Positions 1 to 53,621 of a DNA stretch of 64,000 bases are shown here, piece by piece. The stretch covers positions 5,111,487 to 5,175,486 of the forward strand of contig OZ199838.1 in the NCBI GenBank assembly GCA_964304625.1, in the 5' to 3' direction. Made by a program: the position numbers and the translations under genes. Origin of the DNA: Kudoa neothunni (taxonomy: Eukaryota > Animalia > Cnidaria). The notes under the pieces are model-generated. The model searched no databases, had not been told where the DNA came from, and saw nothing but the letters and a program-made list of their open reading frames with translations. Numbering within the stretch: position 1 is the stretch's first letter; each line of letters starts with the position of its first letter.

Positions 1-1086
1 GGTCAATTCAATGTTTGTTGAAAAAAAGATGGAGATTACAAATGTATCCGACTGCGTTCGGATGAAAAATTCTCAAAATTTTAAAGTTATTATTTTGAGC
101 TGAATTTTTGCTCTCCATATTCTTATATTTTATTACCAATAATTGCGGAAAAAGAACTGTGAAAGAAGACGTTTTTTAGGTGCCGCATACTTCACCATTA
201 CCTGATATTTTATTTACAGGTCTAATGAATATTGCAAACCTAATATGTTCTTATACTATTAAATGGTGAAACGCGTAAAGATTTATAAAAATAAAAGAAT
301 GATTTTAAAGAGCCAATTTAAAAATATCATGATACATTTTAATGCGATTTGACACACTATTCTTCATTATATACTGGGTTTAAAAAACGAAATTTTATTG
401 GTATCGGGGAAACCCTAGTTGAGATCCTACAGGGTCAGTGATAATAGTTTTTGACCTTTTTCGCATGCGTTAAAATAGCCCTCCTGCATATTAGGGTATG
501 CGTGATCTAATTTGTGAACTAGCGCTTTTTTTCAATTGTTATATTTCTATGTTAAGCACCCCCTAAAATTTTTATAAGTGGTATCTTGTGCAAAATGATT
601 ATAAGGATATGGATATATTTTTGAATGATATTTTCAAATTGTTAAACAAATTTTTCTCAATTTTCGTGATGACGTGTAATATATCTCAATAATAATTTGA
701 TGGACGTTTACATTATTTAATAATTTCTAATATTTGAAGTAATTACACTGTAAGGTGTAATAATAATTTGGGCGTAAATTTTTAATCTTATAAATGAGTA
801 AACTAATGAGAAATTTTGATTGTAACTAATCTTATACTTTGCTATACAATATTTAAGTTAAAATAAAATAATATTTTTCTTAATGAATAAATATTCAAAT
901 ACATTAAATTTATTTTTAAGTAAAAAATATACTAACACCAATTACGAGATTGACTTAAGCAGAGAGATTTTAAAAATAAAATTAAGCTGTGGTGATAACG
1001 AATCACCAGTACAATCAATTCAATGATTACGTGTACTAAAAACGTATCGCCCATGTTCACACAAACTCGGAAGCGAATTCATTAAG

Positions 1087-8055: not shown

Positions 8056-9340
8056 ATGAAGAGGACAGTTATATTCCCATCGGCGATAACATCATCAGAG
8101 ATAATAATATCCATGATATTTCGGGCCATGTTGAAATATTTATTATTTCAGGAGACCCAGAAGAAACAGAATTTAATGAAAAGGTTTTATGGAGAAAATG
8201 TACCAATTCAATATGATTTATATACAGGTTTTTTTTAAATTAAATGATATTTTAATAAAATTTAGATTCTTATGAAATATATAAACAATTATTTGATGAC
8301 AATCTTTTATTAGAATAGTTAAGCTGACAAATATTTACTCTCGCCAGAGAAATGATTATGACTTTCATGTATCTGTCGATGAAATGAAAAATTGTATAAC
8401 ATACTTATATTATCAGGTTATCATAACTTACCAAGACAGAAAATGTACTTGGAAATTGCTGAAGACTCTGGCGTCCAATTGGTCAAAAGAGGCCATGACT
8501 TTAAAACGTTTCACAGAAATCAAACGTTATGTACACTTAGCTGATAACAATTCAATCGACGTACGCGATAAAATGGTTCAACTAAGGCTGTTATTCGATA
8601 GATTTAATGTCAATTTTAAAAATTTCGGGTTTTTTGATAAAATATTATCAATTGATGAACAAATGGTGCCTTATTTTGGTATGCAGTCGGACAAAATTTT
8701 TATAAACGGCAAACCAATAATGTTCAGATTCAAGTTATGGATTATGGCCAGAAAATCTGGTTATATATACAGTTTCAAAATTTATTGCGGTAAAGAAAAA
8801 GTAAATAACCAACTTTGTCTCGGTGAGAATGTGGTTTTAAATTTTCTAAAGGATATTGATGATTTAAGTGAAGTGGATCTTAATATCGAAAATTTCTTTA
8901 CATCCGACAAATTACTGAAGTTGTTAACAGAAATGAGTGTCGCTGCCACTGGTACAGTAAGGCCGAATCGAACTGGGGAATGTCCTCTCCTATGCTCTAA
9001 TATTTTTTCCGAAAATAAAAGAGGAAATTTTGAACAATATTAAGATTCGCATCAAGTTTATTGCTCCCAATGGAATGACATGAAACCGGTTATTATAATG
9101 AGACATCACTAAACATATTAATCATTAGTATCCATTAAAAGCTACTCCAAAAATGATAACAAAAATATAATTATTGGCCAGCCTCAAATGATACGTAAAT
9201 ACAACAAAAGCATGGATGGTGTTGATTTGGCCAATAATGTTATTGCCAATTATAGAATTATCATAAGAGGAAAAAAATGGTATTGGTAAACTTTCATTAA
9301 TCTGATATCCATGTGTGTTGTTAACTCTTGGAAAATTTAT
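8056..9340 (+). pseudogene. Decayed piggyBac (PGBD2/3-like) transposase
   Basis: Motifs AMTLKRFTEIKRYVHLADN, LSIDEQMVPYFG, KPIMFRFKLW and ATGTVRPNR. After a stop it continues QWND, YNKSMDGVDLAN and KKWYW*...VNSWKIY. There are in-frame stops, and the DNFF catalytic motif reads ENFF. Confidence 0.9.
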
Positions 9341-9983: not shown

Positions 9984-11951
9984 TTAATCGACTTCCTCAA
10001 TAGTAGGGCCATCACCACCGCTTGGGGGAGCTCCGGATTGAGCACCACCAGGGAAACCTCCAGGCATTCCGCCGGGCATTCCACCGGGCATACCTCCAGG
10101 CATACCACCAGCAGCTCCACCACCGACTTTGGCCATGATTGGATTCCACACTTTCTCAATCTCCGATTTTTTGTGATCGAACTCATCCTTCTCGGCGAGT
10201 TGATTGCTGTTAAGCCAGTCGAGAGTTTCGTTGCACATGCTAATAACCTTTTCACGTTCGGCCGCATCAATTTTGGATTTCAGAGACTCATCATCAGCAC
10301 TAGTTTTCACATTAAAAACGTATGACTCGAGTTGATTTTTGGCTTCAACACGGACACGTTGTTTATCATCCTCATCTTTGTATTTCTCAGCCTCGGAAAC
10401 CATTCTCTCAATTTCCTCCTTGGACAAGCGACCTTTGTCATTGGTGATGGTGATTTTGTTCTGTTTGTTGGTGGATTTATCGACTGCAGACACATTGAGG
10501 ATACCATTTGCATCAACATCGAAAGTGACTTCAATTTGAGGCACACCACGAGGAGCTGGAGGGATACCAGTGAGTTCGAACTTTCCAAGAAGATGGTTAT
10601 CTTTGGTCATTGTACGTTCGCCTTCGAACACTTGAATCAAAACACCTGGTTGATTGTCAGCATAGGTGGTGAATGTTTGAGTTTGTTTGGTTGGAATAGT
10701 GGTGTTTCTTTTGATAAGGTTGGTCATAACTCCACCGGCAGTTTCAATACCCAATGACAGAGGAGCAACATCAAGAAGCAAAACATCTTGAATGGTCTCG
10801 TGAGTATCACCCTTCAAAATGGCAGCTTGCACAGCGGCACCATAAGCAACAGCTTCATCAGGATTGATCGATTTGCAAAGCTCCTTTCCATTGAAAAAGC
10901 TTTGAAGAAGAGACTGAATCTTGGGGATACGAGTGGATCCACCAACCAACACAACTTGGTCAATTTGACCCTTGCTGAGTTGAGCATCTTGAAGACACTT
11001 CTCTACTGGAGAGACAGTGCTTCTAAAGAGATCAGCACAAAGATCTTCAAAGCGAGCTCTGGAGATCTTAGAGTTGAGATCGATACCCTCGTACAATGAA
11101 TCCACTTCGACAGAAGCTTCGCTGCTTGAAGAGAGTGTTCTCTTGGCTTTTTCGCAGGCAGTTCTCAATCTTCTCAAGGCACGCTTGTTGCCACTAATAT
11201 CCTTGTTGTACTTTCTTTTGAACTCAGCCATGAAGTGATTGACCATTCTGCTGTCAAAGTCTTCACCACCCAAGTGAGTGTCACCACCAGTGGATTTTAC
11301 TTCGAAAACACCATTGTCAATGCTGAGAATTGACACATCAAACGTACCACCACCAAGATCGTAAATAAGGATATGTTGTTCCTTTTCGGTTTTTTTGTCA
11401 AGACCATAAGCGATAGCAGCAGCAGTTGGCTCGTTGATGATTCTAAGAACCTTGAGACCAGCAATCTGGCCAGCATCTTTGGTTGCTTGACGTTGACTGT
11501 CATTGAAGTAGGCTGGGCAGGTGATGACAGCGTCCTCCACTTTACCACCCAAGTAAGCCTCGGCAGTCTCCTTCATTTTCACAAGAACCATAGCAGATAT
11601 TTCCTCAGGAGAAAATATTTTGGTTTCGTTCTTAAATGTGACCTTTATCTTTGGTTTTCCATTGTCACTGATGACAGTGAATGGCCAATGTTTGATGTCA
11701 TGTTGAACAGCTTCATCATTAAAGTTTCTGCCAATCAAACGTTTCGCATCGAACACTGTATTCGATGGATTTTGAGCAGCTTGATTTTGTGCAGCATTAC
11801 CAATCAATCGTTCAACGTCTGTGAAAGCGACATAACTGGGGGTTGTTCTGTTGCCTTGATCATTAGAAATGATTTCAACTTTGCCGTGTTGAAATACTCC
11901 AACGCAGGAATATGTAGTTCCAAGATCGATACCAACGGCCTTACCACTCAT
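9984..11951 (-). CDS. HSP70: Cytosolic HSP70 (655 aa, intronless)
   Basis: Signatures [23 protein letters not shown] and [18 protein letters not shown] repeats, and C-terminal GPTIEEVD. The true start is MSGKAVG at 11951, not the TTG at 11987. Confidence 0.98.
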
Positions 11952-11988
11952 TTTACGACGTAAACTAGCGTGACAACGCGAACCCAAA

Positions 11989-16898: not shown

Positions 16899-19800
16899 TT
16901 AAATGTATTCTATATCATATTGATCTTCCTTTTTTCGATAAATACAGTAGAATACAACTCCACCGAGACCAAGGACAATAGCTGCCGCCATGGACACGGC
17001 TCTAATAAAAAAACTTAGAACACTTAAAAACATTGATATACATTATAATTATTTTTTTCCTAAAAAATATTAAAACACTAGACAACATTCATACTACTTT
17101 CCATGCAGGATGTGTCCGACTAACAAAATTTAGATAATTTACAATAAAAAGTTAATGTACCATTTTTGACGTTGAGGGCTTTTTTAGTTTCTTTATCCCC
17201 TACGACGTTAACAATCAATCTATAATCATTATTCCGTTCAACATCTCGAATAACGAATTCCGAGCATAAAGGTAGAGATTGGCAATCAGCCGCATGTTGT
17301 AACGTGCATTCCTTTATGACCCTAGTTGGTGTATTTGTATCTTTCAATATCCATTCACATTTCTTATTTTCGATATCTTCTCCCTCTAGATAGGATGTAA
17401 CTTTGATACGTTTATCGCTCCACTTTGCATTCACATTAACGATTTTTGTTGTACTCGCTCTTAGCAACATTTACTAAATAATCAAATGAATTCATATTAC
17501 TCAGGCAGTAAAACGTCTCTGGTAATCGTGAGTTTATAAGCCGTAGTTAAATCTTTATCTAAGTATACGGTAAGCGAATAATGATTGGTTCTATCGACGC
17601 TTTCGATGACAAAACTAGAGCAAAGGGATTGACAATCATCATCGGCTGTTATACATTCACTTGATACATTGATTGACAAATCATTATTTTCCAATATCCA
17701 TGAGCATCGCTGGTCAATGATTTTTTCCGTATTTGGTGTGGGTTCCATTATTACTTGGACTTGGATGCCAGACGGAACCCACGCTGCAGCCACATCAGAT
17801 ATTCTCAACTCTTGAGAGCTTAAGGTCATTTAATTTAAAATCATACAAACTAATATTACACTGGCGGAAGTTCAACTAAAAATATTTAGTAAATTTTTTA
17901 CAGCATCCTCATACCTCGATCAATCTTAGCGATGCCATAGTACAATGTATCGATATTACGGTAAAGTATAACTTGGTAGTCGTAATTGTTTGGCACGTTT
18001 GGAATAGAGAATTTTGAGCATGTGGGGAGATGTACACATTCGATGTGCCCCCCGAACAAACATTCTCTTTTGGAAACGACCAAAGTTTGTTGTATGCGCT
18101 GAAGTTCCCACTTACATAATTCCTTTTCATCCATGTCGTTCGGGAGTGAAGAGACAGCGTTCAAAGATGTTTTATCACGTTTCAATGTGATGTTAATTTT
18201 GTTTAGTCGGTTAAAATCATCGATAGTACCCAATTCTAATTAAAATCCGAATTAATTAATAGTAGAGAAGACGAAAGAATAGTATATTTTATAAATTATC
18301 ATTATGTTAAATCAACATCAATAAAATTAACTCCACAACTCGAAATTCATAACATCATTACGTATAATAATGAATACTTGTTTGAACAATAATTTTTTTA
18401 GAACCATAATTCTCATGTGTTACAACTATAATATTATAACGAGTACCAGGGATAAGGTTAGAAATTTGTTTTTCATCGTTACAAAACCCTAAGCAAGGCG
18501 AGGTATCCAAGCATATTGCAGCAGAGTATATATCTTTTTCATATCGACTTATGAGGAAGGAACAAGTAACAGATTCTACAGTATCTGCTTTCAATGATAT
18601 GCTTGTTAATTTTGAACTGATGGTAAACTGTGGGAACGCGTAACCATCTTTTTTCCCTTAAGATATTTTGCTGATAAAAATTTCATTGAAATAGTACCTG
18701 TTCTAATGAATATGGATTCAAAATGATTTTCACTCTCTATAACCACTTGGATGAATAGTGTAATTGGTCTACCAGCTGGAAGATTGCCTATATTCCATGA
18801 ACTCGTGCATTTAGGCTCACACGGGTCCTGTTGGCATTCGCAATCAAATAATGTCAATGGTTTTGGTTTATCTGCCAGATAATATTGACATTTACAGTTG
18901 ATGTCAACACCAAGAGGCACATTTTGTGGTTTGAATAGCTTGGTATTAATACTCAGCCTCGAATTATCGACAATTTGTAAAAGTTCCTCGTTTGAGGAGT
19001 ATTCCTCATTGAACACTAACAAATGTTCATAAAACGCACCTAAAAATGTTACTTTTACCAAACTTTTTCTGTCTGTATCCCTCCAGTAAATTTGGATTTG
19101 GGACAGTCACACTGTGTTGTCTTGTTTGAATAAGGATTTCAGCATATGTATAGCTTTCATTGTCAATCAACTCAACATACTTACAAGGAGCATAACAGTC
19201 GAGGGACGGCGCACCACATTGTGATCTAAATGGATGGTTATTTCCATAAGTCCCAGGTTTAACGTATTTTCTAATGCTAAAACGACAAATTTCTGATGGG
19301 AATTTATTAGTGAATTTGAGCATATATTTGTTTTGTTCACTGGTGTATTTATAGGATATGTAATATTGTAGTTGATAAGCATCTATCTTGTTTTGTTTCT
19401 TATTTTTGGTTGGCATGTGAAAAAAGAAATCAGGTCTGTATGCACACTTAATTATATAATATGGAATCATTTTAATGTATTCAAAAGTAAATCGTGCCAC
19501 ATCTTGAATACAGTTGCTTGCAGCAGGAATAACTTTGTATCTGATGTCGTTATAATAATGGACAAAGCATTGTCTTTGGTCACAGGTAGATACTTCGATT
19601 AAATAGCCTTCTATATTTGCACTCATATTTATATCTGGACGAATTAATGGTTCTAAAGGAATTAAAAACAAAAAAGTATCTAGTATATAAAAATACGAAT
19701 GGGGAATCCGTAAATATTTGTTTCAGCTACAGGGTATACCTCTTGACTTTCCAAGTTATTTAACACCTTAACAGTAACGTATTTTGTTTCAGAAGGTAGT

Positions 19801-20133
19801 TTTCTCAAAGTATATTTAAACTGGCCACTATTACATGGCTTGGCACAAGCACTTCCTTCACAGCCATGTATGTTTTTAAATACATCTTTGTTGCGGCCCA
19901 ATTTTTTCACGATGCATTTGGTACCAGGTTTGTAGCTGAGGCCAGTTAAATTCAAGTAAATTTTTCGGAATTGATCAAGCTTTAAAGTCTGGTATGTGAG
20001 AATATTTACGGAATTATTACTCTCATTTTGGTTGTAAACACATTCCACTAAAAATGCCAGATAGAAAAAAGACTAAAAATAAGTTACCAATAAAGTAAAT
20101 CCCCACGATCTTCAGCCAATTGATTTTAGGCAT
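16899..20133 (-). CDS. Orphan type I membrane protein, ~894 aa, eight Cys-rich FN3-like repeats; 12 exons
   Basis: Seven ORF-track fragments join in one frame through GT-AG introns 20087-20048, 19696-19653, 19058-19016, 18697-18657, 18377-18236, 17914-17876, 17859-17819, 17500-17460, 17160-17120, 17097-17060 and 17041-17002. Signal-like N-terminus MPKINWLKIVGIYFIVEC, TM IIIIAVSMAAAIVLGLGGVVFYCIY, tail RKKEDQYDIEYI*. Confidence 0.82.
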
Positions 20134-45325: not shown

Positions 45326-48300
45326 TTAAACGAAACCAAAGGTTCGGCATTTTATGGCGGAAAGTAGTTGGGTTTTAAGGATCTTTTTAGTAGAATACAA
45401 GGGAACAAAAAGCTTGGTGGAACAGGTGTTGGCAGTGGGTAATCTAAAATCATCCAAATATTTGATGACCACTGTGGGATTGCTATGCTTGGCGGAAAGG
45501 TAGTCGGCTGAGAGATTTGGTGAGGAAGTCCAAAATGTGAGTAGCTCACTTCGTTGTGATTGTGACAATTCATTACACACGGACCAAAACCATGCTTTGA
45601 ATTGATCTATTCTAGCTTGAGGAACGTTGCTGGCTTCAACCACAAAATTGGTGACTTTCTTCAGCATATCTACAGTAACAAACGTGCAACCATTGACTAA
45701 CAATTTAAAATCTTCTGCGGTCAGGGTGGAGAACAGTTCTAAAGGAATAACTTGGTTTAAGCCTCTTTTCATGGCCTAAAAATGAAACAATATCAAGTTG
45801 TTCTATTAAAAAACAAGAGTTAATAGGTACCTCCAATTCAAGCTTGACTGAGTCTACCATTTGGAATAAACAGAATTTTTCCACGTAAAAGAGAACGTTT
45901 TTCGGTGTGACGAGAATATCACGGCCACCTGGTACAAGATCGAAGAGTCGCAATCTACCAGAGACCACTTTTTCGGTCGCAAAGTACAATCCATATAAAT
46001 GCTCATCTCTGTCTTCAAATGCAGCCGCATCAATGATCATTTTTCGCATTGATTCATAGAAACAACCATCATAGAAAGCGAAATCATGCCACGACAACTC
46101 TCTACCTAGCAGATATTTGACAACTGGTCGAACAAGTACCAAAGGACACGGCACATCCAACACAATACACTGACCAATAAGACGACCAACGTTGATAAAT
46201 GCATTGGTTCGTTCACGAGAACGTTTGCCTGACATTGGTATATATTGTCCTTTGATGGCTGCTTCATCGAAGAGAGCCTCAGTGTCATCGAATTTAATCT
46301 CTTCATTCATATATAGTTGTTGCTTGGTAACGCGCTGTTTAAGAGGAACCTCCAGATCAACTTGAATCTCCCTAACGTAATTGAACAATACGTGGTGGTT
46401 GGTTATGCATCGTATAAGCGCATCATGTGGAAATGAGACGATAATTCCAGTGACCAATTCTGCCATACACACATTCTTTCGCTGTAAAAAGTTCACAATA
46501 CACCTTCCAGCACTCCTTTGAGCGCTGGTGAGTGAAGGATTTGAGTCTTTAAAAGCTTGGGAGGTGGGTACTGAATAGTTGGGCAATCGGCTGGTTGTAG
46601 AGGCGCGTAGAACACAAGTGTCTAAAAATGATTCGATATCATCCATCAATGAAAAATCTAAATAGGAGCGTGTGTTTAGAAAAACGTTTTTGAGATCGGG
46701 CAATTTTTGTAGGGAGATTATAGCCAAAAATACGTCATTGACAAAGTTTCTAGTGACACCTTGGCCCTCACCAGGTTCATTTTTAAAGGTGGCAATGATG
46801 CGAGGAATTTTTTCACTGCCATTTGGTTTGGAAAGGCGGAAAATGGTGTTAAGTTTCTCAAAGGTGATCGGAAGGATCTCTTCAAATTCGCGAGGCATAC
46901 CTTTAATTGTGTACTCCTTGAACGACTTGTACATGGAACGATTGAGTAGACGTTTGAAGCTGCGTACTTTGGTATCATAGTGGCCAATCTCTAACAATGA
47001 CGATCCGGGCTCAGCTCCAACATCTTTGAGGAACAACTTGGCAAACGACGTCACACAACAATTCCAACGCGCATACAAATCAACCAAATCCCAATCAAGC
47101 ATGTTGCCTGTTATATTATTTTGATTGTATTGAAAGAGATTGGTAGAGTAGGGATTTCTGGATGACGGGTGACTGCCAGGTTGATTGTGTCCATACGTTG
47201 ACCTATTCGGATTGGAAGCAAACCCAAACAAGTCTTGTTTGGTTGAGGTGGGCATGAGTAGACTGGGATTTAGGGCGAATGGTAAAGCTTTTTCTAGAGG
47301 AGTAGTTAACTCGTCCGGTACCAATGATGCCAACATTAGTGTGGAATCAGTCCTTTTGAAAAATCTTACTGTTTTTCTAACAGCATTACTATCACTGGTA
47401 AATTGAGGATCGCTTGTGGAGGAACAATCTGGCAACATTACCACCTGATCAAAACTGCTGTTGTTGTTACTGCTATTGCTATTGTTAAGATAATTAGTAG
47501 CACTAAATTTTTCCTCTTTCATGTAATAGACAAAGGCGTCAAAGATGTAAGCAACATAACGCATTGAGCTTATATCCACTTTAGGCATCATATAGAGATG
47601 TTCATCATTCGATGACCGAACTAGTGATAAAATGCCGGACAAAAAGTTGACACGTAGATTGCTATTATATTCGTCCTCATCTTGGCTTTCACCTAACGCA
47701 ATAGCAGAGTTGCGACGGAAATAATTCCAGCTGAAGTTAGTTGTGTCGTGGAGTTGTTGGTAGTTTTGCACCAGAAAACCCATCTCATTCCTGATCAACT
47801 TTGGGAGACGATAGTCAGTGGTGACGCCGTGTCGAAGCAATGCTTCAGTATAGTCCATAATACGGAACAGCCAGGTGGTTACATACTCAAGACTAGTTCT
47901 TAGGGATTGTATCACATGTGAAAAACTAGCATCATTGTGCATGTTGGACCGTTTAATGATGATAGTCACCGTACGTAGAATACTCGCAAACGCTCTTGCC
48001 GAAGCTTCATTCGAAGAAAGTACTGTAGGATAGGAACTGTTGGCAACCAATAGAGAGCTGGTAGTACCTGCACCACCTGCATTACGAGAGGTACCAAAAG
48101 CTATACTGGGACGAGTTTGTTGAGTTTCGTTGAATATGGTGGAGATTACACGGGGATGGCCTTCTGCAATTTGTGTATGGCGTCCCAGAAAATCTCTACC
48201 CGGAGCACCAAACACGCGGTTAGCACTATTGTTGATTGACCAATCGAGAGAAGCCACAAGTCTATTATTGTTGCTGCTACCAAGGAATTGGTCATGTGAT

Positions 48301-51300
48301 AGAGGCTGTTCAGTTGCGAGTTCATTAGGGTTATTGTGTGGATCAACATTATCAACGGCAGGAAGTTGATCGTTGTTAAGAAAAATGGGATTATCAGGCA
48401 TATTGCTAAGGGGATTTGATGGGTGAAATAGACCATTTGGATCGGTAGAAGTTGTGGCTATGTTGGTATTGTTTGCCAATGGATCAATAAACGATCCGTT
48501 TCCTCCAGCTCCTCGATTGAAAATCACACTCACAGATCGATTAATGTTTCCGTTTCTGTTGTTACCAGCACCACCAAATTGGGAAAATCGAGGGAGTGCA
48601 TCGAAAAATTCGCCCCCAAGTGAGACTGGATCTTCAAGTCCAAACAAATGAGATACATCGCTGTTCTCTGAAATATCATCAAGGCCACCACCACCAGCCT
48701 CATCGGAGGAAGTTGTCGACGGCGAGTACTCGTCTTCCTCTTCGTCGATAGTCAGATCTGAAGTTTCTTCATCTGAATAGGAGCTGTAATCATCCACACC
48801 ATCAACATCATGACTGATAACAAAGGGACCACCAACTCCCCCTCTATAAGAGTTGGCGCCACGATCATCATAATTTAGGAGTGTTCTGTTGACCGAATCA
48901 CCAAACTCGGTGCCCACATTATCAAGATCTCCAACACTATCGCCATCTTCATCATCTTCGGAAGTCAAACCTTCAGTATCTTCATCATTTGAGGTGGTTT
49001 CATCGGCCGAATCCACTTCATTATCAGAGGAAACTGATGGAGGCTCAATGCTAACTTCAACCAAGTTACCACGATTGATCAATGCTTCACTGTGGGAAAT
49101 GTTTTTGCTGATTTTTGGATGTAGAATGAACATTTTGACAGTTTTTTCAATACAGTCAGCCTCATTATCAGCCAGATTGACGTTATGAAGGAAACTGGTG
49201 ATATTCATAATAACCGGTGTTATAACGGCATTTGCCATGGTAACCAAAGTTGTGACAGATAATGTGGGATCGATAGAAAACAGATCGTAGAATATATTTA
49301 AATATTTACTAATGCCGGCACTCTTATAGAGTCCGGGTGACATACCGGATATAAACACATTGAAAACACGACACACCGAACGGATAAAAACATCAACAAT
49401 AGCGGAAGGAGTAGATGGGATAAGTGATGAGGTGTGAAACTGATCCCGTTTCAATGAGGCGATTAATCGATTTAATGGATCGCTTTTACATTTGAAGATG
49501 AGATAACACACTGTGGAATCCACATAACGAACATCCCGTTGTCTGTGGCTGGTTCCAATTTCTTCTTCGATGGACTGAAAGGCAGAGTGTTGGGAGTATT
49601 CGTTTGCAAGATGAGCGCTTCCATAGTTTGGATTGTCGTCGGCGAGATCACGTGGAGTTACAATCTTTTTCACTAGGGACACATTCGAGAATATAATCTC
49701 TAACGCAGCGATAATAAAATCGAATTTTGGCACAACTGATTGGATTTTGAAACCATGCACAAGTCCACGCTGAAATATTCTGTCTAGGTCATTTGAGGTG
49801 ACATTGTCCGAAGAGAGAGGATCTTTCCGAGCAAGTACAGGCATTGGGGGGAAAATAAACCCAAACGATCTATTATTGTTATTACCACCACTGGCGGCAG
49901 CAGTGGAATTGATATTCGCTTCAGGAGTGTTTACGTTAATGGTGGTTGTTGTAGGATTATTGGTTGTTTGTGGAACACCCAATGATACTGTGTTATTGTT
50001 GTTGTTGTTGTTGATTTTGACAGATGAGAGATCGGTTTTATGAATGTAGTCTGGTCTGGATTCAGTGTATAACAAAAAGGCTACCAATATATCCCACCGT
50101 TCATTACAAACCGATCCAAAAATATCCACGCTATCGACCAGCAATTTGAATAAATTCAAACGCATGTCTTGATCACCGCCGATCAAACTCTTGCAGTGGG
50201 ATATCTCCCAGCAGTCACAGTATGCTGTGGGTGAGGCACCCATGAGAAGACAATTGTGTCCATAGTGACAGACGCTTGCACATTGAGAACAGCAACAAAG
50301 TTTCCCTGACAATGAGCATGTATAGCATTGGTATATATCTTGTTTGATGTGTTTGGGTCCGGACCATGTGAATGAGCACACGTCGTTAGCACACAACATA
50401 TAATATACAGAGTTGTTAGGAGAATAGGTTTTATGAGGGAAAATCGTGCGTAAAAGAACGGCCTTAAGTTGGTTGATATCGGTTTTGTTGAAGTGTTGCT
50501 GGTCTAGTATTAGGTTGGAGTTGTCCGTTTGGTTAGGGTCTAGTGAGGATTGCTGTTGTTGTTGCTCATATGTTGGCACAACAATGTCCACTCTATCCAT
50601 CAATAAATCCAGCACAAACCCCACGTACACAAATGCCACATGATAACTTCTAATAGAGATAGCATAGATGATAGGAGTGAAACCATTTATATCACACGAT
50701 AACAGATAATTGATAATAGTAGGTTGGTATTGATGGTGACGAACAAATTTACGAGTGTGTTGTGCAATAGCCAATTCTTTTTCAGGATTGGCACCATTGT
50801 GCTTGTAACCATAATAGAGAGCTTCATAAGCCAATACATGTAGAATATTTTGTCGCTGGTAGAACAGTGACTGTTGTAGGAGTTTTTCGGGTGTGTATTT
50901 ATTCTCTAAGATATCTCTGAAAATTGAGCTGTGTCTAGGAAGAAGTACACATAGATTGAAGTGTTTGTTTAATTTGGTGCTTGATTTGTGATGGCTGAAC
51001 ATTCGAATAGCGGAGATAAGAGGGAAGGCCGGTGCATCTAAAACTCTTGATTTGTTTGTACATCTTCGGAAAATTGTTTCGCCGCCATCGTTAGTGGTCA
51101 ATACAATCAGATCACCAAAGTGTTTCATAGCGGTGATGGTAAAGTTTCCATTCATGAGACCCAATCGTATGGAATCAGGCACATTGAATTCTATTTCTCT
51201 AAAATTTTTGCCTTTGAACTCAAACACAGCGCCAGTGACTTCACCATTGCTTCGTTCAACGATAGAAAGAATGTTGTATTGGTTGGCGGAGATGGCTAAA

Positions 51301-53621
51301 ATTTTGTGTCCGGTAACGGCGCTGTTAACCTTTATAGGTTCACTGGGAATTTTGTATTTGATGTAGGTGGTAATTTCGTTCGCATTTTTCTCATTGAAAA
51401 TGTGCGTATCGGATATTTTCCATACCGACAGCAAAGAAACATTAGCTTTGACAATGACTTCTTTGAATGGTTTATCGATCAGCTCGGGGTCGGTACAAAC
51501 AATCAAATTGTTTTTCTCCACTTTGATCACAACTCCCAATTCGTGACGGTAGCAATTGTCCAGCATGTCGTCCAGGAAAATCACGTTATCAATACGCCAA
51601 GTTTCAGTGTTGCGAAGAGGTTCCGAGGGGCCGCCACCCCCACTAGCATCACTTGCAACAATGCCGGCGGATCCGTAAATAATAGGCCCACTTGTGGTGG
51701 TACTAGTGCAACCAACGCTAGAGGTGACGTTATTATGGCTATGATTAACGTCTGCTGGGATGACAGGGTTGATAGAGGAATGAGGTGTGGAAGAGCGAGC
51801 GCGTTTAGTAGGTTTACCAAATTTTGAGGTCATACCAAAAGTGCCTGGATCACGATAATCCTTCACCACTTCAACGACAATATTGTGTGGAAGCTCGGTG
51901 ATATCACTGGTGATTCTACCAAAACGTAATGTGTCACTGGATACATCTACAACAAGTGATCCTTCGCGATGAAGAGGACAACGAAAGTTGTACACTTTGG
52001 AGCCGACTGAAAAGTTGTTTGATTTGTTTCGATCTTTGATTTTCAATTCGTTCATGTATGAGAATTGTAACGGCATCAACATTGGCATTGATTTCAATCC
52101 CCAAAAGAAAGCCTGGCCATTCTCCATCAATATAACCGCGTACGAACTGCAAACACTGATTCTCTTTACGGCACTGTTGTTGGGCATTGGAATCTTGTGA
52201 TTGAGTTCGGGCAGAAATGGGACACATCTATCCAAAAATGTGTACACTTTATTGGTGTCAGTGGAGAAACACAATCTCAAAGGAGATGCATCCACATGAA
52301 CAACTCGTTCTTCAGTCACTCCCAGTTCTAATAACCGTGTGTGGCTGTGAAAACCCCAAGATGTGGGTTGTTTGTTTTTGGTGTTGATTAACGGCTTCAA
52401 TTTGCGCCAATTCCATTGATGTAATCCACCCAACTCATCCAACATCACCAAATCTGATCTCATTGCAAATATACGTTTGATTTTGGCATTGCCATCCATA
52501 CTCCACCATATGGGGGAAGGCACCTCCACACACACATCAGTTTCACAGTCCAATCTATTTGGAGATGTGCGTGGTTGGTTGAGTGAAGTGTCTTGGCGGG
52601 TTCTAGGTGGAAACAAATTTTGTTGAAAACGCATGGATAGCGGACGTGTATTATTTCCAATATGTGTCACATCACCAGGATGATTAAGTTGTGATGTGAT
52701 ATTTGGGACTACATTAAGTGCACCACTATCATCACCACCATTATTTCGATTGGAAATTTGTGGCTGTTGTTGTTGTTGCTGCTGTTGCAATTGAGCGGAG
52801 GGAAAAAAAGGCCTTAGGGGGTTATAACTGGCGGGGTTTGTCGAAAGTGGATTGTCAACAGTCCGCTGCGTGTTGGGATCAATATAAAACCTTGTATTGG
52901 AAGGGACTTGGGAGGTCACACGCCTAGTCAACGCAAGAAGTGTGTCATCAATGGTAAGATTATTCTGTGCTAGCGCAATTGCAATCATGTCTCTTGGAAC
53001 TTGGGGGAAATCATGTTGAACTCTATCGATCAAATTATCGGGTATAATATTGCGCGAAATTCCACGTAAACGTCTCAACTGATGAGGAATAGTGGAATTA
53101 GCCAATGAGTTGCGTAACTCAAGAGCTTCGTCTGGATTAATATCGTTTGCTAATAGAGTTTGACGTTGTATCGCTAACGTATTTCTATCATTGGATTGTG
53201 TTGCCGTACTGTCGCCAGCTAAATTGAAACAAAGTACCGTCAAATAAAGGAGGTAGGCGAATCAAAAAATCCCTACCATCCAATGAAAGTCTAGGTCTTT
53301 TACGATCTTTGTTCTTCTCATTCGCCCTAGGACTGTTGTCGTGTTTGGATTTCTTTTGACTCACTTTATACACCAAACGACAAACTCGTCCATCCTTAAA
53401 AATACCATCTAGCTAAATTACAAATATAATAAATATGTTACTTTAGTCAATAGCGCTATATGCTTGTCAGAAATAGCACAATCTATAAACTCTTCGTTGT
53501 CACACTTGAAGAAATCGTCAGCTCTAAATTTTGTTTCATTGATTAATCAAACTATGAATATCAACTGCTACAATATTACCCCTTATCATTTCGAAACGTA
53601 TTTTCAAATATTTTCTTCCAA
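45326..53621 (-). CDS. UBR5: E3 ubiquitin ligase UBR5/EDD/hyd (UBA, UBR box, degenerate MLLE, HECT)
   Basis: 5' exons give HIALLTK|DGRVCR (cf. HAAFLLEDGRVCR). UBA reads IIPDNLIDRVQ. UBR box reads CSFTWSG..HIKQDIYQCYTC...CCCSQCASVCHYGHNC. The 55-nt intron 45830-45776 joins to the HECT C-lobe LPTANTC...FGFV*. The start codon was not resolved. Confidence 0.96.

Follow-up and report, generated by a model that had tools for sequence, protein, structure and literature searches.

What kind of gene occupies the minus strand from position 20133 to position 16899 of a 64-kb stretch of Kudoa neothunni DNA (assembly GCA_964304625.1, contig OZ199838.1, forward-strand positions 5,111,487 to 5,175,486; the whole stretch is called the window below), and does it stand alone? 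Kudoa neothunni is a myxozoan cnidarian parasite of tuna muscle. Myxozoans are highly reduced cnidarian parasites whose host-interface molecules are, to our knowledge, almost unknown. A preliminary description took the locus to be an orphan surface receptor built from eight repeats resembling the fibronectin type III (FN3) domain. The explanation that we consider best overall, and probable, is that the gene encodes an intact type I membrane glycoprotein with an FN3-like rod, that it is a solitary member of a large gene family, and that its product serves in adhesion or as part of a coat. Within this explanation, the structural and family statement is held with high confidence and the adhesion or coat role is tentative. 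The disulfides, the surface location and the role itself are what we infer from the features described here.

On the minus strand from an ATG at 20133 to a stop at 16899, open frames follow one another in a chain, spaced by very short GT..AG intervals. A least-cost GT..AG chain, with two junctions refined by hand and re-checked, joins 12 GT-AG exons into an uninterrupted coding sequence of 2,685 nt, or 894 amino acids (aa). All 12 exons are open and all 11 introns run from GT to AG; ten of these introns measure 38–44 nt and one measures 142 nt. The surrounding DNA of the window is AT-rich and eukaryotic, at ~30% GC. The splice model was made in silico, and the joined product was used solely for counts of frame, phase and cysteines; homology, fold and database searches were run exon by exon. 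With the eight modules numbered R1 to R8 from the N-terminus, the gene reads as follows.

20088..20133, minus strand: exon 1, with the start codon and a signal-like N-terminus (MPKINWLKIVGIYFI); the intron after it measures 40 nt and is in phase 1
19697..20047, minus strand: exon 2, module R1, four-cysteine pattern at residues 44, 62, 67 and 71 plus one extra N-terminal cysteine
19059..19652, minus strand: exon 3, modules R2 (divergent cysteines) and R3 (four-cysteine pattern), the source of the R2+R3 profile and genome matches
18698..19015, minus strand: exon 4, module R4, six cysteines including the four-cysteine core
18378..18656, minus strand: exon 5, module R5, the closest of the modules to FN3 in sequence (ISNLIPGTRYNIIVVTH), with a Pfam fn3 match below threshold
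18236..18377, minus strand: intron 5, 142 nt, the sole intron beyond 38–44 nt
17915..18235, minus strand: exon 6, module R6, membrane-proximal type (CKWELQ...), matched by the proximal-type profile A1 at E 3.4e-35
17860..17875, minus strand: exon 7, 16-nt micro-exon in the R6-R7 linker, required by the frame together with introns of 39 and 41 nt
17501..17818, minus strand: exon 8, module R7 (RCSWILE...), the module used for the structure model
17161..17459, minus strand: exon 9, module R8 (KCEWILK...), 36% identical to R7
17098..17119, minus strand: exon 10, 22-nt juxtamembrane micro-exon, modeled by hand; the least-cost alternative reads through it
17042..17059, minus strand: exon 11, predicted 18-nt micro-exon (KKKIIII) in which a hydrophobic stretch begins
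16899..17001, minus strand: exon 12, encoding the transmembrane helix and the 12-aa tail (RKKEDQYDIEYI) up to the stop codon; paralogs have the same transmembrane helix and a short tail

This layout recovers exactly, and with the same coordinates, the 12 exons, signal peptide, eight repeats, transmembrane helix and 12-aa tail of the preliminary description; the peptides quoted there (KCEWILK..., RCSWILE..., LCKWELQ... and ISNLIPGTRYNIIV) all occur in the open reading frames (ORFs) of the exons. Its remark that introns fall near repeat borders holds at seven of the eight borders. Introns 1–6 and intron 9 are in phase 1, and phase-1 introns at module borders, such as the first six, are what animal genes with shuffled extracellular modules typically show. 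The analysis supports a type I membrane protein of FN3-like modules that have a non-canonical four-cysteine signature and arose by module and exon duplication. The micro-exons of 16, 22 and 18 nt (17860-17875, 17098-17119 and 17042-17059) are needed to keep the frame with introns of the regular length. At the 3′ end of exon 3, 19059 was preferred to 19113 as a choice of model; the R3 part of this exon carries the most conserved motifs of the family, KFTNKFP.E.C.F, CYAPC..VEL and EILIQTR. Three of the 11 introns end in AAG acceptors that have no pyrimidine tract (TCTTAAG, CCTTAAG and TGCTAAG, in the minus-strand introns at 18657-18697, 17819-17859 and 17460-17500).

The 894-aa product starts with a short hydrophobic N-terminus (MPKINWLKIVGIYFIV), continues through eight modules of 92–116 aa and a juxtamembrane segment encoded by two micro-exons, and ends with a transmembrane helix (AVSMAAAIVLGLGGVVFYCIY) and the 12-aa cytoplasmic tail. 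The ectodomain has seven N-x-S/T sites. What defines the modules is their cysteines. In R1 and R3–R8, that is, in seven of the eight, the spacing is C1-(17..23)-C2-(5..8)-C3-(4..6)-C4, C1 lies in the context C-x-[W/F/Y/V], and a Y-x-[LIV]-x-[VI] strand begins 10–15 residues after C4. R2 is arranged differently, with cysteines at positions 24, 29, 48 and 70, and the earlier observation of a four-cysteine pattern in most repeats with a divergent R2 agrees with these counts. The same spacing in seven separate segments is not due to chance. All four cysteines are invariant in 23 aligned paralogous copies of the proximal type, where the invariant positions (R7 numbering) are C38, W40, L42, C55, C62, C66, F69, I71 and Y80. 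R6–R8 keep every invariant family residue (four Cys, W and Y).

The cysteine pattern also separates this protein from two other kinds of surface molecule. It does not resemble a variant-specific surface protein of the Giardia type: each module has one CxxxC, there is no CxxC series, and the tail is RKKEDQYDIEYI and not CRGKA. Nor does it fit the immunoglobulin superfamily, since the Y-x-L-x-V strand (F) bears no cysteine and all four are found from the third strand up to where the fifth begins.

Significant pairwise likeness among the modules at the level of sequence is confined to the membrane-proximal three. R7 and R8 are 36% identical (E 3e-14), and R6 pairs with R8 at E 1.7e-10 and with R7 at E 2.7e-4; in pairwise comparison of the eight modules, all other pairs gave E >0.07. 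Profile–profile alignment by hhalign between module types was not significant either (E 0.034 for A1-A2, whose alignment does bring the expected motifs together, 0.023 for A1-A3 and 0.24 for A2-A3). The R4 type was recruited by an iterated search started from the R5 type. To speak of eight repeats of one module is to lean on the shared cysteine signature and the predicted fold, not on demonstrable sequence homology of all eight.

The fold is best indicated by R5 and R7. No Pfam family rose above threshold in the exons of the gene. The best fn3 (PF00041) match was that of R5, at 14.2 bits and E 0.053 (gathering threshold 25 bits), and no other exon matched fn3 at E ≤1. Among the R5-type copies of paralogs, 18 of 21 match Pfam fn3 (best E 0.0035) and 18 of 21 match FN3_DSCAM-DSCAML_C (best E 5.6e-4), both below threshold. 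Against PDB sequences, the R5-type (A2) profile found titin (7.4e-7), fibronectin (1.1e-4) and contactin (4.3e-4), and all of these matches pass through the E-F motif ‘LxPGTEYxxxVxA’ (‘LxPGTxYxxxV’). For R7, an AlphaFold model was built with the alignment of 23 proximal-type copies. It is a seven-strand sandwich with a predicted local distance difference test score (pLDDT) of 76 and a predicted template modeling score of 0.71. Foldseek against PDB returned FN3 domains and the immunoglobulin (Ig)-like domain of GH2 enzymes (E ~7e-3, template modeling (TM) score 0.45–0.64), and an ESM-Atlas shape search returned fn3, interferon-receptor, tissue-factor and GH2 sandwiches (TM score 0.62–0.70). With VIA-align, the top 50 of 48,161 PDB chains were almost entirely FN3 domains (Z 8.3–9.6; root-mean-square deviation 2.4–3.5 Å across 83–97 of 105 residues). 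The matches include ROS1/Sevenless, fibronectin, LAR/PTPRD, Dscam, DCC/neogenin and cytokine receptors.

The preliminary wording “FN3-like repeats” is borne out for R7, by its model, and for R5, by its sequence profile. It is in the predicted model of R7 alone that a seven-strand A-B-E / C'-C-F-G sandwich superposes on solved FN3 domains. For R2 and R3 the FN3 fold is no more than a possibility: their joint exon gave a poor model (pLDDT 52.6), whose R2 part met only generic Ig-like sandwiches (Z 6.2–7.3). A beta-trefoil lectin fold was also considered for R2+R3 and rejected; its recognition score from ESM features (1602) was below the useful range, and the fold search with the R2 part gave it no backing. 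We conclude that at least the R5 type and the R6–R8 type are predicted to have the FN3 fold. The R7 model puts C38 together with W40 on strand three and C55 at the end of strand four; the turn that leads into strand five holds C62 and C66. These positions would place a cysteine brace in the C/C'/E region, unlike the B-F disulfide of Ig domains. The four invariant cysteines presumably form two disulfides per module.

Comparison with known FN3 proteins (PF00041: fibronectin, PTPR/LAR, DCC/neogenin, Dscam and ROS1/Sevenless) delimits what is new. The window protein is like them in the seven-strand sandwich of the R7 model, in the E-F ‘LxPGTxYxxxV’ tyrosine-corner motif of R5, and in its general construction, with one module per exon, phase-1 introns, a tandem rod and a single transmembrane helix. 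It differs in that no module reaches the Pfam fn3 threshold and in that it has almost no cytoplasmic domain. In addition, canonical FN3 domains do not have the four invariant cysteines of this family, C-x-[WFY]...C-x5-8-C-x4-6-C. By our strand assignment, the aromatic residue next to C1 stands on the third strand of the R7 model, whereas the canonical FN3 tryptophan is on the second.

The cytokine receptors among the structural matches raise the question whether the protein could be the ligand-binding subunit of a signaling receptor, like a class I cytokine-receptor alpha chain that pairs through its transmembrane or juxtamembrane region. A C-x-W motif with paired cysteines is reminiscent of cytokine-receptor D1 domains. 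Class I receptors (D1-D2) also share a disulfide-bearing FN3-type domain with the window protein, and EpoR, GHR, gp130 and IL-receptor domains are among the fold matches, as are FN3 domains of cytokine and growth-hormone receptors. However, the 894-aa model contains no WSxWS when inspected by eye, its cysteine spacing is different, and it has eight modules in place of a D1-D2 pair. No Pfam cytokine-receptor match was found, the 12-aa tail has no box1/box2 motifs, and the structural matches are generic to FN3. We regard this alternative as highly improbable. More generally, the term “receptor” in the preliminary description is not favored because the tail is so short: 12 aa here and ~4–10 aa in the four paralogs examined.

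The claim that the gene is an orphan did not survive a search of its own genome. Only the best 150 candidates of each genome search were scored, which makes the family counts lower bounds. The R7 exon gave 213 candidates (best 150 scored), and the R5 exon gave 370 (best 150 scored, down to E 4e-18). The R2+R3 exon, present once per gene, is the best guide to numbers. It had 362 candidates, and each of the best 150 has E ≤1.6e-26, so that this exon matches at least 149 other genomic places at that level. Judged from these matches, the family comprises at least 150 genes (at least 149 besides the window gene), and possibly about 360. The window gene belongs to it by the R2+R3 exon, which the hidden Markov model (HMM) of the corresponding alignment, A4, matches at E 1.3e-71.

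Its architecture leads to the same conclusion. In four paralogs, examined in 10-kb stretches, the module order is R1-R2-R3-R4-R5, then a module that we call X, then one proximal-type module. R1–R5 each have position-specific counterparts in the same order in paralogs, with R1-type matches at E 1.5e-9 to 1e-3. A fixed order of such counterparts means that the heterogeneous architecture is older than the family expansion. It also qualifies the preliminary statement that the membrane-distal repeats are far more diverged than the proximal ones. Only R6–R8 are significantly alike, as that statement held, but R1–R5 are not simply older, decayed copies. The paralogs examined begin with a hydrophobic exon of ~15 codons followed at the equivalent place by a short GT-initiated interruption, which measures 40 nt in the single paralog where its extent was determined. 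All four have a transmembrane helix followed by a tail of ~4–10 aa. In these paralogs the start of the transmembrane helix, ‘RIIA...’, is in one piece; the window gene has an intron between II and AVS.

The window gene thus has the fixed order, the signal exon, the transmembrane helix and the short basic tail of the family, and departs from it in two respects. First, it has no module X. This Pro/Ser/Thr-rich module lies between R5 and the proximal module of paralogs and contains, for example in the paralog stretch L039:6002-6847, a mucin-like insert of 40–60 Pro/Ser/Thr-rich residues between the second and third cysteines, which is probably an O-glycosylated loop. The X profile weakly touches R8 of the window gene (E 1.9e-5). 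Second, the window gene has three proximal-type modules, matched by the A1 HMM at E 3e-35, 2e-26 and 2e-33. From these profile matches, the proximal module is read as triplicated and module X as absent. The 142-nt intron 5 (18236-18377, minus strand) sits exactly at the place of the paralogs’ module X. It may be what is left of an exon that was lost, or else a nested (twin) intron.

Within the family, the window gene stands apart. Its closest paralog, among the best 150 of 362 R2+R3 candidates, is 41–42% identical to it; the aligned paralogs, which were picked from the best matches, are far more alike, with a mean column identity of 67% in A4. In a maximum-likelihood tree of the R2+R3 region, the window gene lies on a long branch of 1.9 changes per site, in an unresolved base among sequences from other samples, outside a 31-member clade (Shimodaira–Hasegawa-like approximate likelihood ratio test 98) and outside an 8-member group. 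Long-branch effects make its exact position unsafe. There is no second family member within the 64-kb window. In a few regions elsewhere in the genome, many family matches follow one another on one strand at intervals of 5–12 kb and read as tandem arrays. On this evidence, we place the window gene as a solitary, deep-branching member of the family.

A long branch could also be that of a relic of the family, decaying or no longer expressed, in which the frames have stayed open by chance or because its origin is recent. The aberrant 142-nt intron and the loss of module X would fit such a relic. Yet the 12 exons are open, the 11 introns run GT..AG, ten of them have the genome’s length of 38–44 nt, and the invariant residues are kept in R6–R8. 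A long branch combined with an intact 2.7-kb coding sequence argues for selection, and we consider a relic very improbable.

The size of the family raises another alternative, that it is a repertoire for antigenic variation and immune evasion at the fish–parasite interface and that the window gene is an expression unit or a donor. At least 150 genes, the matches 5–12 kb apart on one strand that read as tandem arrays, and short tails that recall other parasite coat families all point in this direction, as do the variable surface proteins proposed for the myxozoan Sphaerospora molnari. Two papers on a myxozoan other than Kudoa neothunni describe other putative variable surface proteins and not the four-cysteine family. 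The window gene itself is the opposite of a recently exchanging cassette: it is solitary, shares no more than 42% identity with its paralogs, and occupies a branch that is both long and old. As a matter of general knowledge, Kudoa plasmodia live inside muscle fibers and are largely shielded from antibody. A variant surface antigen is therefore, in our judgment, a rather improbable role for this gene.

Relatives occur in other sequenced samples as well, which is a further reason not to call the gene an orphan. A HMMER search of 1.84 billion protein representatives with the R2+R3 profile gave 16 matches, 13 of them at E ≤1e-10 and six at E ≤1e-30. Eight of the 16 were looked up and are single-member clusters from ENA or Logan assemblies, fragments with no protein name. 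Five were located to SRR31175926, SRR33849685 and ERZ795007, on contigs of 17–35% GC that keep the module order R2R3, R5, proximal. One of these contigs (L045, logan:SRR31175926, 4,611 nt) has this order at 16.6% GC, so the family persists in an even more AT-rich relative. It was the one contig compared with the Kudoa neothunni genome and is not DNA of that genome, matching it only over ~57–106 nt at 74–82% identity. A 325-aa paralog ORF had no match in a word search, which covers proteins of ~180–570 aa only and says little. Neither a Pfam model for the family nor a named or curated representative among the 1.84 billion proteins was found. Judged from these matches, the family appears to occur only in a small number of organisms with very AT-rich DNA, which are presumably multivalvulid myxozoans or further species of Kudoa.

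In a further alternative, the protein would be a parasite–parasite adhesion molecule or spore structural protein that joins spore cells (valve, capsulogenic and sporoplasm) or enveloping primary and secondary cells, and not the host. FN3 rods with short tails are generally typical of homophilic or heterophilic adhesion scaffolds, and the constancy of the module order, together with strong conservation of R3 and R5 between paralogs and between species, suggests a conserved partner more than pure diversification. A structural role leaves the need for at least 150 copies unexplained, however, and we rate it as quite unlikely.

We return to the broader reading of an adhesion or coat protein. In that proposal, the signal-like N-terminus and single transmembrane helix would display the ectodomain on the parasite surface with almost no cytoplasmic part. 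Eight beta-sandwich modules of ~100 aa would form a rigid rod, each stabilized in the extracellular milieu by its four-cysteine brace in and around strands C, C' and E, and binding of a ligand, whether carried by the host or by a second parasite cell, would fall to the membrane-distal modules. Lacking a cytoplasmic domain, the protein is expected to serve in adhesion, in a coat, or as the subunit through which a complex binds. Most likely it would be a passive surface adhesion or coat molecule, and any signaling would need a partner protein. The founder of the family would already have had the order R1-R2-R3-R4-R5-(X)-proximal, and the window gene would then have triplicated the proximal module.

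Several points weigh against this proposal. The short signal peptide contains a lysine within its hydrophobic core. Three micro-exons and the 142-nt intron depend on the gene model, which exists in silico only. According to the genome paper, very few RNA reads mapped to the parasite (PMC12239612). The profile–profile tests (E 0.023–0.24) fall short of proving the module types mutually homologous. Two of the eight modules, R2 and R3, lack a reliable predicted fold. The disulfide pairing, the location and the ligand are presumed.

Other surface families offer analogies. Hydractinia Alr genes, which are reportedly unusual allorecognition genes of the immunoglobulin superfamily in a free-living cnidarian and are said to have signaling motifs in longer tails, appear similar as cnidarian arrays of type I membrane proteins with sandwich domains that evade sequence-based detection. 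Their domains are Ig-like and not FN3-like, and the two are likened by description only. Plasmodium 6-Cys/s48/45, Toxoplasma SRS and cestode EG95/45W proteins can be compared as large, lineage-specific parasite surface families of disulfide-stabilized sandwiches. No sequence or Pfam relationship links the window protein to these families, which are mostly GPI-anchored, have 1–14 modules and belong to another fold subtype, and no homology is claimed. EG95 is described in PMC8894454 as an FN3-containing family.

For Kudoa neothunni, the assembly published by Weber, Paulini and Blaxter (2025, PMC12239612) spans 40.2 Mb with a scaffold N50 of 12.0 Mb, in three chromosome scaffolds and a circular mitochondrion, with 30.4% GC, a median intron of 49 bp and a (TAAACC)n telomere at one chromosome end. 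The genome that we searched comprises 40,260,978 bases in pieces of 17.15, 12.04 and 11.05 Mb and about 18 kb. (TAAACC)n was found only at the end of the 12.04-Mb piece (C2:12039536-12040069), and no telomere repeat is present at the start of C3. A nematode origin, to which three chromosomes, 40 Mb and short introns might point, was rejected: no SL1 was found within 3 mismatches. A search for the cuticle-collagen N domain was negative too, but it is weak evidence, as it gave no match in any control genome. The annotation lists 5,316 genes from protein hints only, and 45.6% of the assembly is repetitive (PMC12239612); the family may be partly unannotated or masked as repeat. The genome paper mentions neither gene families nor fibronectin nor transmembrane proteins (PMC12239612). 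Three neighbors of the gene in the window are listed here.

8384-9040, plus strand: piggyBac-type transposase fragment (DDE_Tnp_1_7, E 6e-32)
9987-11987, minus strand: apparently intronless HSP70 gene (E 1e-259)
45708-53243, minus strand: single ORF of 2,512 aa with a HECT domain at its end

The FN3 fold and the general plan of an FN3 rod with a type I anchor are known. In the literature and databases searched, there is no description of the four-cysteine signature, of the constant order of unlike modules, or of an expansion on this scale in a myxozoan. The family shows how an animal adhesion fold was rebuilt around a constant four-cysteine brace and afterwards multiplied massively in a parasite. 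With 150 to about 360 type I surface proteins, the family would rank among the largest components of the 5,316-gene set. Should the majority of the roughly 360 candidates be genes, they would equal some 3–7% of the annotated number and be absent from protein databases.

Finally, the outlying position of the window gene gives it a particular interest. Single-copy, old, with three proximal modules and no X, it is the member of the family most likely to have a conserved function, and it would serve well as an outgroup when the expansion is dated. One could go further and suppose that the family is the main surface repertoire of Kudoa, a counterpart of SRS, 6-Cys or VSG-type coats, and that the window gene is its conserved founder with a non-redundant role such as host-cell attachment or spore cell adhesion. 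We think this extension speculative and unlikely as a whole. If it were true, the window gene would offer a defined target by which a fish-muscle parasite of commercial importance could be diagnosed or blocked.

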